Positions 2,890-51,553 of a DNA stretch of 64,000 nucleotides are shown here, one piece after another. Positions within the stretch are counted from its first letter, which is position 1. The number at the start of each line of letters is the position of its first letter. The notes beneath the pieces were generated by a model that was not told where the DNA came from, made no database searches, and saw only the letters and a program-made list of their open reading frames with translations. Position numbers and translations under genes: made by a program. Source of the stretch: Podarcis filfolensis (Eukaryota); assembly GCA_964270895.1 (NCBI GenBank), contig OZ185449.1; one strand, written 5' to 3'.

Positions 2890-4291
2890 TTTTTGATTTT
2901 GGTCCTGTAGACACTGAAAGTGGGACAGCAAAGGCAACCCTCCTATGTCTTGGAGAGGCTAGACTGTAGTCAGTCTCCTAGCCCAGGTTTACCATGTAGT
3001 TGTGGGACACAGCAAGCACCTCCTCTCTTGGGGAATAGTGCTCCTATGGTTCATCTGTACAAAGGGCTCTCTTCCACAGACTTCAAATCCAGAGGCCTGG
3101 GAAGAAATTGTGGGAGAAGTCAAAATTATGTAGCAAAGGAATGCTTTTCACTAACAGAATTCCTCAGGTGATTCAGCGTGCACCATCTCACATTCATTCA
3201 TTCAATTTATTACAGTCAATAAGCTGGAAATAAAATAAAAACATAAAGCATACCAGAATCTAATAGCAAAACAGATTCAGAACTGTGACATAATAACAAT
3301 TATATAGAACTATTATAATCTCTGCTTAGTCTTAGTCCAGATTCAGGTGCTGTGTTGTTCGTATGTTTTCACAGCTACTGACAAAACTTTAGCCACTATC
3401 AATGATATCCTTGGGATTTTATCTTCCATCAGATATTTAAAATAAAGTTGAACTGATCTTCCTGGTAATTTGGTGAGCAAAGGGTTGAAAAACAAAATGA
3501 TTTGCTCTAAAAATTCTGCTTCCTGATTATTACATGGGCATAACCTTGAGTAAAGAGGGGTGCAAGTGTATCTGTCTCGAAGCATTTGAGATGAGAAAAC
3601 ATGAAATCTGGGCAGAGTAGAAGCTCTGTAGTATATAACTACAACAGATTTGTGAAGTAAATAATCAATGAAGCAGCTATGAGTTAATTAATTGTATACC
3701 ACCATGATAGTGGTGTTGAATAGTGGCAATTTACAAACAAACTAACTAATTGTGCCTGGGAAGCACCAGCCAGCCTCTATTTCCAGCCATTATTGTTGTA
3801 TAAAGAGCAAACTTTGTAAACAACTGAACTGTTCCCCTTCAAATAGCAAATTTACACTTAGCTATATTTAGAGTTCCATTAGTCACAGAAGTCTAGGAAG
3901 CCACTTTTAGCACTTACACTCAAAAGACATGTGAAACTATTACCCTTTAGTTTGTTTAATTGGTCACAGATGCAGGATGGCTAAGAATTAGCTACTGCAT
4001 AAGACAAGAAGAGTAATTAGAACCTTTCACTCTTCCACCTTCTCAACAATTTACTTCTTCCTACTTTGCTTGCTCTCTGAGGTTGTATAGTTGTTTCAGA
4101 ATAGCCATAGGAGCAAAGGACTTGATTGTTTAGTTAATGGCTATGGTTTGTTCTTCTCAGAGTAGATCCATTGAAATTAAAGGGCATGGCTAACATGAAT
4201 ACATTACTTTAGATGAGTCTACTCTGAATAGGACTAGCCTTGGATCCAGCGCTTTCTCTTTTTTTCTTCTCTTCTCTACTTCATTGCTAAA

Positions 4292-4646
4292 GGGACGTGG
4301 GTGGTGCTGTGGGTTAAACCACAGAGCCTAGGACTTGCCGATCAGAAGGTCGACGGTTCGAATCACCGCAGCGGGGTGAGCTCCTGTTGCTCGGTCCCAG
4401 CTCCTGCCCACCTAGCAGTTTGAAAGCACGTCAAAGTGCAAGTAGATAAATAGGTACCGCTCCAGCAGGAAGGTAAACGGCGTTTCCGTGCACTGCTCTG
4501 GTTCGCCAGAAGCAGCTTAGTCATGCTGGCCACATGACCCGGAAGCTGTACACCGGCTCCCTTGGCCAATAAAGCGAGATGAGCGCCGCAACCCCAGAGT
4601 CGGCCACGACTGGACCTAATGGTCAGGGGTCCCTTTACCTTTACCT
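4292..4646 (+). mobile_element. Full-length Sauria SINE (Podarcis-type)
   Basis: tRNA-like head with B-box (ggttcgaatc), Sauria core, (ACCTTT)n tail; flanks ctacttcattgc / ctacttaattgc resemble a TSD. Confidence 0.92.
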
Positions 4647-12577: not shown

Positions 12578-12705
12578 NNNNNNNNNNNNNNNNNNNNNNN
12601 NNNNNNNNNNNNNNNNNNNNNNNNNNNNNNNNNNNNNNNNNNNNNNNNNNNNNNNNNNNNNNNNNNNNNNNNNNNNNNNNNNNNNNNNNNNNNNNNNNNN
12701 NNNNN
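12578..12705. other. Assembly gap (128 N)
   Basis: Run of N characters. Confidence 1.
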
Positions 12706-36089: not shown

Positions 36090-38400
36090 GTGAGTGTCCT
36101 CTTTGCCAATAAATAACCTTCAATTAATGGTATAAGATGTTAGTTGCACTGTAGTTTATATGTACTGAACCCATGTTTCAGTTTACTTCAAGGAATTAAT
36201 CAGGTCCTGCAGGGTAATTGTGGCCATAAATGCAGCCATTCTGAGGTTGGGTGGAAGCTCTGTCACTCCAAATATTCACTGTGTGTATCCCCTATATTTT
36301 GTGCTTCCTACACTACATTTAGCTCTTATTATCCCATCAAGCTATAAAATAAACATTTTTCAAACCTACCTTAATAAGAAAACATGACATCTAACTTGTC
36401 AATATTGGGCTTTTGTCATAAACCAGAGTCCACATACCCTTTCTGCTTACAACACCTTCTTAGAAAGCCACAAATACAGCCCCATTTTCATTAAGCAAAT
36501 CATGTTCAACTATGTTGAATAGCTAATTCCTCATAAGAAATTAAGCCAAATACATCTGCCTTGTCTAGCACATATCAGAGGTGAAATCTGGTCCAGTTCA
36601 GACTTGATAGGCCTTAGTGCAAATGGACTGAGTGGCCTTGAGAAGTCCCACAATTTTATTTACTAAGCTGCAAAATTTTCCAACAAAAGAGCTTTGAGAT
36701 AAATAAGAGTAAAATTGTTGAGTCCTTTCCACACTGGAAAAAGGTGTAGTAAAATGATGCGTTAGAAATTATTCAGGAAAATATCTCTCTCATAATGATC
36801 CTTCTTTTGCTGATTTGATCCTTCCAAACAACATTTGGAAGGTCACCAGTAAAGTGTACAGATTCTGGTACCTCATCTTGCCAGTCACCCTTAGGAATGG
36901 GCTTCCCTCCCGCCTGCACACAGTGGCAGGAGCACACCTCCATCAATACTTTCACTGACACCTGCTGGGGAAAATATGTTTTTATGCCTTTTCTGGGGTG
37001 ATGCTTATTTCTTATGCCTACAATCACCAGGCACTATATTAAAAGAGGATGCAAGAAATATTTCATGGAGCACAATGATCGTAGTTTCACACTCTCAGTG
37101 CAAGGAGGGTATGGCCACCATCTTGTTTCATATTTACTGGGTGCACAGTACTTCTGTTTATTATACTGTACATGATATCACATCCTATTTCAAGAAATAA
37201 AATTCAGGTTTTCTTTTTCTTGCTGAATGTGTCCTTATTTAAAGTGCAGTAAATTGGCAAAGGTAGGGAGAGTTGCACTTAGATAAAGCAAATATTATAT
37301 TTTTGAGTTTAGAGCCTTTTGTGTGAGTAACGAAGTCAGGATAGAAAATGTCATTTATAATCTTAAGAGGGTTGGTCTTCCATTGAAACTGTTTGCCTGA
37401 GTTCTGTGTGTTGATAGTTGTAAACTAGGAATAGAAGAAATTGATACAAGGGACACAGTGTCCAAGAACACATTACAAAATCAAGTTATGCAGCTTCAAC
37501 ACAGCCAGATTCATTATTCCAACTGATGAACTAAAAAATAATAATACATTGTTATTTTTTAGGAAATCTCAAATTTTGGCCATGCCATTATTCAGAAATT
37601 TAGCAAAAAAGGGCAGGAGAACTGAAATGTTCACCTCTGAGAAATGCCTTCATTGTAGCTGAAATACATCGCTTGTGCTAGGGATATTCTCCCCTCAAAC
37701 AGAATCTCCCACACTGTAAGGAGTCAGGTACAGCTTGCTGATTGACTCCTTCTGCTGAAGGGCTCCCAACCACCCAGAGCAGTCCTGCTTAGCAACACAG
37801 AAGCTAGATTTTCTTTGAACTCAACAGTCTGATGAACATTTAAGCATGCTACCCCTACCCCACAAAAAATCTCTCCCCAACTGATATATCCTAGGTAGAG
37901 CCTATTACAGGTAACACAGGGAAGTTTTTTTGTGGTGTGCCTTCGGGCTTCTCCCTCCCCTCCACTGCCTGTTTCTCATGACCAGGGCAGGAAAGGAGCT
38001 CATAGATTGCTTCAATTTGATGCTTGGAGCTGGAGGCATATGTTTTGGTATCAAAACCGGGGAGCAAAGGACGTTCCAGCCTCAGGTCTAGGCAGGTGTA
38101 CGGGTTTCGAGCGGAGCTACTAGAGCTACTAGTGCGAGTTATTTTAGATGCCCAGAGGGTGGATTCTTCAGACTGGAGTAATCAGAACTGTTTCTTCAGG
38201 CTCTGTCCTGCCTTTCTCTGATTTAAGAGGGGATAAGGCACATACCCAATTTCTGTTACAAAGATGCTATCCAGCAAGGCATTTAAAAGGCAGTTTCATG
38301 TTTCAACCTTGCCCAGACCACAAATCCTAGGTGCCCTCAGGCAATGAGCAAGGGTAGTAAATGCCTTAAGAACTAATTGGATTACACCGCATCCTCCCAT

Positions 38401-38926
38401 ATCTTGCTTTATTGCGGTCTACACACCCAAAATACACAGTACAACAATAGTAAATATCAACAGTTATTAAGGTGTAAAATTGGCCTTGCTAGCCAACATA
38501 GGAGTTTCAGCCTATACATAATGGTTTCTGATTTTTACTGCCTCTGAGAGGAATTTTGCTACAGCCAGTGTAGTAGTATCAAACTTATCCTCAAGGAGAA
38601 CCTTGACATGAAATGAGTCAGCAATTCCCGGTTGTTCTGTTAGTATTAGATTGATTAGATGCTTTCTAACCCGTTTATATAGACTACAATGCAATAAAAT
38701 GTGTTCCATACATTCAACACCCTGGGAACATGGGCACAGCCTGTCTTAGTATGGGAAACCAGCCAATCTTCCCCTCAGCACTTCAGAACAGAAAACATTT
38801 AATCTGGCTTTGGAAAACAGATGCCGATAGTTAGATACAGTCAAATTCTTAAGGTAGGGAGATGACAAAAGAACCCTGAAGGTATTGGATTCCTGACACA
38901 GATGGACCACAGGGCACATGTGAGCA
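38401..38926 (-). mobile_element. 5'-truncated non-LTR retrotransposon 3' end (clade uncertain, possibly RTE-X-like)
   Basis: Minus-strand ORF2 C-terminus YLKNLTVSNYRHLFSKARLNVF...PY*DRLCPCSQGVECMEHILLHC...TTTLAVAKFL with a CCHC-like knuckle and one internal stop; 3' end gaccgcaataaa. Confidence 0.8.
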
Positions 38927-39027
38927 ACATGCAAATTTGTGAACCATTCCATATTTTTTGTGCTTGCTTGGGCAGCACATAAACTAAAATTGGAGCAATA
39001 CAGAGAAGATTAGCATAGTCCCTGCTC
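38927..39027 (+). pseudogene. RNU6: Circularly permuted U6 snRNA retrocopy: U6 nt 76-107 (38927-38959) followed directly by U6 nt 1-68 (38960-39027)
   Basis: Compared with the recalled vertebrate U6 sequence: 28/32 and 60/68 identity, ACAGAGAAGA box intact, all seven U6 CpGs mutated, no TATA upstream of nt 1. Confidence 0.93.
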
Positions 39028-39030
39028 TTC

Positions 39031-39112
39031 ATACTCAGAGTAGACCCATTGAAATTAACATGCATGACTGACTTAGGTTCATTACTTCCAGTGAGTCTAC
39101 TCTAAGTAGAAC
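39031..39112. mobile_element. Short palindromic MITE family (other copies about 4151-4233 and 50648-50718)
   Basis: ctcagagtagacccattgaaatt ... gagtctactctaag inverted arms recur three times in the window. Confidence 0.6.
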
Positions 39113-39323
39113 TGAGTTTACTATAAGCTTTTGATTGTCTTTGCTGAAAGAGACAAAAAAAGGCTACCACTATGGAAATTTTCACAAAGAAGTTGAGGAC
39201 TTCTCCCTGGGACTGAGAGTCCAATTACAGAATGTTGTGGAGTGGTCTTGTCTACATTCCATCCTCCCTTCCTTTCAAGAAGAAAGCACTTGCCAGATTT
39301 GATTGTTTCCCATTCTAGGCAGG

Positions 39324-50432: not shown

Positions 50433-51553
50433 GTAAGGTTTTTCTTCTGTTTCTGTTTGAAGCTAAAATAGTAGCCATGTGGAAACTTTTTGAATGGGGT
50501 TATAACCACAACAAAAGCCCTAGGCAAATTAGGAGTGCTTACACCACCTGCATCTGAGCTCTCAAAGTTTCTCCAAAATTGCATTGTTTGCGAATGGTTG
50601 TAAAATATTATTGTATGGATTGTAACCGATATTAGTTTTATTTCAAGTGTGTCCATTAAAATCAATGGGCAAGGCTAACTTAGATTCATTAATTTCAGTG
50701 GGTATACTCTGAGTAGAACATAGTTGGAGACAACTATTATTTATATATTTAAAGTAGTGTAGTTCAACACACAGGTCATAAGGCCTTTTTTTGGCACCCC
50801 TCAGCAACAATGTCAACATCTTATCACCAAGCTCAGCTACAGCACCTTTGGGCCTGCTACCTCCAGACTGCCTTTTCCAGGGGAAGAGGAAGAAGCAGCT
50901 GGCTTGACAGTGGTCTTGGCTATTTGTATTCATCCACGAGGGTTGTGGGGGAAGCTGCTCTTTTCTGCAAGACTGCATACTAAAAAAGTCGCTTTATAGA
51001 CTTTTGAATCTGCCCTGAGCAGAGCAGGTAGCAAGTGATGGCTGGTGGGTAAGGCAACACATAATCACTGTCCCATGTCTTTGTGCAGTTTCTTATGTCT
51101 TGTGGTGGAGGGATGTTAATTTGCCACACCATGCTTTGATCCCACCTGTCTCTATGCGCCTAGCCCCTCCCTTTTAAAAAATGCTTTATTACACCCCCTT
51201 CCCGGCAAGAGGCACTCTGCCTGGTGCTCCCCAGGGTGTTCCGCCTAATAATGTGTCACGTGCATACCACACTTTTGCTTCCTTGACTCTGGCAGCTGAA
51301 TGTCATTTTAGAGCAGGGGGCAAGGGGAAGGAGATGTTGCTGCACCAAAGCCCCTTACACATAAGGAGCACTGAGAGGACCTGAGCCCGGCCCAGCTACT
51401 TGCTAACTATGCAATACTAGCTATATTGCAAACATTTTAATTTATGATATGGAAATTTAATTCAGTGTGCAGTGCATGGTTTCTCTGTTAAAGTACTCTT
51501 ACTCTTGGTCTGAGATTTTTACCCTGCTCTTCAGCCAAAAAGACTTCCTGAGC

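Follow-up and report, generated by a model that had tools for sequence, protein, structure and literature searches.

A permuted U6 snRNA retrocopy back-to-back with an L2-like LINE fragment in Podarcis filfolensis, probably a template-jump variant of an inverted LINE/snRNA chimera

The 64,000-nt stretch of Podarcis filfolensis DNA analyzed here (the window) contains a U6 snRNA retrocopy in which the 3' end of the RNA precedes its 5' end, lying back-to-back with the 5'-truncated end of an L2-like LINE fragment on the opposite strand (Table 1). The best-supported reading of the locus is a reverse-transcriptase (RT) jump variant inside an inverted L2-like LINE/U6 twin-priming chimera, a type of chimera that has been described, represented by one old copy. 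A single old retro-insertion of this kind, in which each DNA end of one break gave rise to its own cDNA and the RT jumped between U6 ends, is given a probability of about 0.6. The U6 3'-to-5' junction itself, with one T between the oligo-T run and the +1 G, can have been formed only at the level of RNA or of reverse transcription. The first-pass annotation of this DNA had recognized the permutation, which is borne out by the two Rfam alignments in Table 1. It had also treated the copy as a free-standing retrocopy, a view that the fusion to the LINE does not support, and as belonging to no described class. The latter holds for the permuted U6-to-U6 junction, for which no paper was found in the literature searched, but inverted chimeras of 3'-truncated snRNAs and LINEs have been published (PMC4476161, PMC13174262).

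Table 1. Features at the permuted U6 locus, in window coordinates.
Feature	Position	Strand	Basis
5'-truncated 3' part of an L2-like LINE	38408..38926	-	translation, zf-RVT match, protein collinearity
U6 snRNA nt 76-107, 3' end with oligo-U run, decayed CpGs	38927..38958	+	RF00026 model 74-105
Extra junction T	38959	+	sits between the two Rfam alignments
U6 snRNA nt 1-66, exact 5' end via ACAGAGA box to start of internal stem-loop, 3'-truncated	38960..39025	+	RF00026 model 1-64
Palindromic MITE-like hairpin repeat, ~90 nt	39026..39116		inverted arms and other copies

In the whole window, U6 (RF00026) was the only Rfam family found by cmscan at or above its gathering score. This match is to the 5' part of the RNA (model positions 1-64 of 105; 54.5 bits vs. 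a gathering score of 44; whole-window E of 6e-11). A permissive cmscan of the 301 nt from 38850 to 39150 added a second match at 38926-38958, aligned from 38927 onward to the last 32 positions of the model, terminal U run included. Taken alone, the 3' piece scores 13.1 bits, with 25 of its 32 positions identical to the pan-eukaryote consensus, and it lies directly against the 5' part. By chance, both strands of the whole window together should contain 6e-5 32-mers that match this well (at most seven mismatches); this, and the position of the 3' piece exactly against U6 nt 1, excludes a chance match. Since the vertebrate 5' stem-loop takes up two insert columns (two extra bases) relative to the Rfam model, the segments are numbered here as U6 nt 76-107 plus one T, followed by nt 1-66. 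The T could reflect either a longer oligo-U tail or a non-templated addition by the RT ahead of a jump. The order along the plus strand can be read directly: the antisense LINE, running from its 3' end to its 5' truncation, then U6 nt 76-107, the T, U6 nt 1-66, and flank.

The copy holds 98-99 nt of U6 in total, slightly below one unit. Of the two bases right after U6 nt 66, one is a mismatch and one a match, and both already belong to the hairpin repeat on the right. The internal gap proposed in the first-pass annotation does exist, at nt 67-75 (9 nt) rather than nt 69-75 (7 nt). Its statement that all seven U6 CpGs are mutated is correct for six, one of them changed by a C-to-G transversion, while the seventh (C66-G67) was cut by the breakpoint, not mutated; and its view of the insert as an old methylated genomic copy fits the whole-window CpG observed/expected ratio of 0.20. 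The permuted order, the absence of nt 67-75 and the changes at six CpG sites and several other positions are at odds with a functional U6 gene, and the copy is a pseudogene, a dead fossil without function.

By cmscan and sequence comparison, neither U6 part was found a second time in the window or the flanks, which argues against a split dimer. An 18-nt stretch resembling the U6 3' end at 39171-39188 on the minus strand was considered and rejected: it is at chance level (~0.4 expected, estimated by hand) and gives no match in cmscan. The only run of Ns in the window (12578-12705, 128 bases) is far from the U6 locus. Of the words that make up the stretch 38300-39300 (1001 nt), 58-82% recur in contigs carrying at least seven organism labels, more than the 38% possible from the flanks alone, so the insert is shared among those organisms. 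Small libraries, possibly RNA, from another organism contain 14-39% of the words of the same stretch. The region 38300-39300 may lie in a transcribed intron.

To the left of the U6 copy, positions 38925-38515 (minus strand) form a reading frame that is open except for one stop at 38746-38748 and has a CCHC zinc knuckle at its end. Translation places the ORF2 stop at 38512-38514, and the 3' UTR terminates in AATAAA at 38408; no (TGAA)n tail is seen at the 3' end of this copy. The 77-aa C-terminal piece has a weak match to the Pfam family zf-RVT, the sole Pfam match among the LINE pieces. An exhaustive HMMER search with it gave 35 matches, among them proteins of 1084 and 1113 aa with APE endonuclease and RVT_1 domains, where it aligns at the very C-terminus. 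The 59-aa piece immediately upstream in ORF2 is collinear with those same proteins. Against its closest fragments, P0003 (61% identity) and P0017, it remains collinear up to 38895-38916, so the 5' truncation of the LINE lies no more than about 10 nt from where U6 begins, at 38927. A separate homologous-protein search with the 59-aa piece returned no candidates, and in the ESM Atlas the LINE pieces fall only in eukaryotic clusters without names.

A diverged relative of this LINE is present in the window as a 3' fragment at 3130-3611, also on the minus strand, where AATAAA is followed by (TGAA)3. Its C-terminus has 40% protein identity to that of the locus LINE, and at the DNA level the two copies are too divergent for the comparison to fix the 3' end or the age of the locus copy. 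The (TGAA)n type of tail is cited for L2 by Doucet et al. (PMC4476161). The fragment beside U6 is accordingly termed L2-like on its sequence features, with the TGAA tail present only in the related copy.

On the other side, a palindromic repeat abuts U6 nt 66 (position 39025) within 0-3 nt. Its arms, at 39032-39058 and 39082-39108, are 81% complementary. Further copies lie at 4156-4235 and 50689-50720, with the same start point as the one beside U6. Directly downstream of the first of these, 4296-4460 is presumably a tRNA-like SINE head of the Sauria-SINE type, an identification made by eye. The shared start point and the unrelated upstream flanks of the other copies indicate that the hairpin is a separate MITE-like element, which is taken here to be the target-site flank. 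The possibility that it is part of the retrocopy, or that it split a longer U6 sequence, was rejected on that shared start and because no U6 remainder lies beyond it.

The orientations of these pieces suggest how they could have come together. The U6 cDNA would be the minus strand, extended leftwards from the right flank, and the LINE cDNA the plus strand, extended rightwards, which is the geometry of twin priming. Two sources of the break are conceivable: an L2-like LINE engaged in twin priming, or break repair independent of the endonuclease but with the same geometry, a variant that the absence of both a tail and a target-site duplication (TSD) would also fit. We know of no endonuclease cleavage motif for this L2-like family. 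At the left DNA end, LINE RNA would have been copied from its 3' region, ending in a truncation near 38926. At the right DNA end, the RT would have been primed inside U6 snRNA at about nt 66, which we take to be in the loop of the internal stem-loop and hence single-stranded. It would have copied U6 to its extreme 5' end (nt 1), perhaps adding one base, and then jumped end-to-end to the 3' oligo-U end of U6, on the same or another molecule. The nearest U6 3' end may well have been that of the same molecule, whose 3' tail was still uncopied; such a jump would impose a one-unit ceiling on length without a circle. Copying would then have run from nt 107 back to nt 76, and the resulting cDNA would have been joined to the LINE cDNA. 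Non-LTR RTs are reported to jump serially from the end of one template to the end of the next, with non-templated addition (PMC8857657, PMC8594491).

Much of this corresponds to an arrangement already on record. Group IV of Doucet et al. (2015) comprises 3'-truncated snRNAs inverted against 5'-truncated L1s, including one U6/L1 case, which were explained by internal initiation in single-stranded snRNA loops from a top-strand nick (PMC4476161). The published cases are mostly U5, 5S and tRNA, with the single U6 (PMC4476161), and a 2026 catalogue lists antisense small-RNA/LINE-1 chimeras with 5S, tRNA and U5, in which the 5' end of the RNA is at the LINE junction (PMC13174262). As in that class, U6 (plus strand) and the C-terminus of the LINE ORF2 (minus strand) are opposite and adjacent here, with the LINE traced to ~38916 and U6 starting at 38927. 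U6 is likewise 3'-truncated, at nt 66, and its nt 1 faces the 5' truncation of the LINE, with a 33-nt U6 3' segment interposed. A start of reverse transcription inside the snRNA, from the second DNA end, would also be shared. Unlike the published cases, the locus has the last 32 nt of U6 plus a T between nt 1 and the LINE, which would call for a further end-to-end jump; the LINE is L2-like rather than L1; and no TSD bracketing the whole chimera could be shown.

Canonical U6/LINE chimeras are arranged differently, with a full-length sense U6 directly upstream of a 5'-truncated LINE and the U6 3' end joined to LINE sequence. Template switching has reportedly been proposed as their origin, by Buzdin and by Garcia-Perez. 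Moldovan et al. (2019) proposed RtcB ligation instead (PMC6789731). The locus resembles these chimeras, including the U6-L2 and U6-RTE examples of platypus and Anolis, in that U6 is joined, or accepts the RT, at its oligo-U 3' end. It resembles the platypus U6-L2 chimeras further in that the upstream U6 segment is 5'-truncated and a non-L1 LINE clade is involved. In contrast to them, the U6 3' end here joins U6 nt 1, and the two U6 pieces, in permuted order, both run opposite to the LINE. More than one template change per insertion would be a point in common with the tripartite retrogenes ascribed to double template jumps by Gogvadze et al. (2007), but those combine different RNAs in one orientation, whereas here the same RNA species occurs twice and the result is a circular permutation (PMC2104539).

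An exact 3'-to-5' junction could also have been present in the template. In this alternative, the template was a covalently joined U6, either a monomer circle or two copies linked head to tail by an RtcB-type ligase, and it was internally primed in the same two-ended geometry. This is unlikely, though the best placed of the alternatives; from the sequence alone, a jump and a pre-ligated template are indistinguishable. The exact junction and the total length just below one unit would both fit it. RtcB links the 2',3'-cyclic phosphate of U6 to 5'-OH RNAs, and such chimeras have been retrotransposed (PMC6789731). Permuted retrocopies of back-spliced circular RNAs have been described as well (Dong et al., 2016; PMC4897178), and, as in those circRNA-derived pseudogenes, the 3' end of the RNA is joined to its 5' end here, nt 107 (plus T) to nt 1. 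The pseudogenes of Dong et al. differ in deriving from back-spliced exon circles with independent RNA evidence (PMC4897178), whereas the end chemistry of U6 disfavors ligation and no paper on a natural circular U6 was found in the literature searched. To our knowledge no circular U6 has been reported. U6 nt 1 normally carries a gamma-monomethyl triphosphate cap. RtcB requires a 5'-OH (PMC6789731), so that ligation at exactly nt 1 is disfavored.

The near-unit length is weak evidence for a circle. Under a model of uniform random truncation of a second U6, the probability of a total of 107 nt or less is 0.38, and that of a total within 9 nt of the unit is 0.09; the likelihood ratio in favor of a circle is at most about 2.6. 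A jump within the same molecule accounts equally well for the length ceiling, and there is no copy of more than one unit, as a rolling-circle template might leave. The earlier choice between a fossil of circular U6 and one of an RT jump therefore stands as far as an RNA- or RT-level origin is concerned, with the jump the better supported by the geometry of the twin-primed LINE chimera. That U6 exists as a covalently closed circle or other self-ligated form in the lizard germline, with this locus a fossil of its reverse transcription, opened internally and one unit long, is very doubtful; if true, it would provide evidence of circular U6, and of the retrocopying of a small-RNA circle, for the first time.

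The preferred reading, a jump within an inverted LINE/U6 chimera, also depends on whether LINE and U6 arrived together. The abutting LINE end and the orientation of the LINE favor a single event. Counting against one are the lack of a TSD and of a (TGAA)n tail, LINE homology that stops ~10 nt short of 38927, and the existence of just one copy. A search for a TSD of at least 7 nt, comparing 38300-38480 with 39010-39070, gave none; the longest candidate is a 3-nt TGC that stands at the end of the left flank and again at U6 nt 64-66. In platypus L2 chimeras, the U6 segments are 5'-truncated and the TSDs are only 1-9 bp, and Anolis has U6 chimeras with L1, L2 and RTE LINEs (PMC4476161). Given TSDs this short in L2 chimeras, the absence of a long one is not strong evidence against an L2-driven event.

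Separate arrivals are less probable again than a ligated template. Here the permuted U6 would have arisen alone, by RT jump or from a circle, and both its neighbors, the left-hand L2-like LINE and the right-hand hairpin, would be independent insertions that happen to abut it. Such arrivals would be in keeping with the absence of a TSD bracketing LINE plus U6 and with the unmatched last ~10 nt on the LINE side. The hairpin, too, abuts U6, and just as tightly, which shows that elements of this repeat-rich region do come to lie side by side by coincidence. An independent LINE ending within about 10 nt of the U6 edge would nevertheless be unlikely (<1-2%, as a rough estimate), and it would also need the exact orientation of the published twin-priming class (PMC4476161). 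A lone U6 copy primed at nt 66 would, moreover, still require a DNA primer and a second end.

An origin at the DNA level, from tandem U6 retrocopies or genes that deletions or insertions later cut back at both ends, or else from an assembly error, has no positive evidence and is the least probable of all: Pol III U6 genes require upstream promoters, and no gene array yields a T run directly followed by the +1 G; cmscan and sequence comparison found no U6 remnants beyond the LINE on one side or beyond the hairpin on the other; no assembler would make exact end-to-end joints between CpG-decayed U6 halves; and the sharing of words among organism labels noted above also counts against it.

As a single decayed copy, the locus has no functional importance. 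Squamates carry many active LINE clades. If the reading of one insertion with an RT jump is right, the locus would be an in vivo record of non-L1 (L2-like) LINE machinery priming on U6 from a second DNA end. The same insertion would record internal initiation in a loop of U6, and also a template jump from the 5' end of the RNA to the oligo-U 3' end of U6. This last, end-to-end jump would bear on the open debate over the origin of U6 chimeras, in which template switching stands against ligation of the RNAs beforehand (PMC6789731): at the capped nt 1 of U6, a junction would be hard to make via RtcB and easy to make via a jump.
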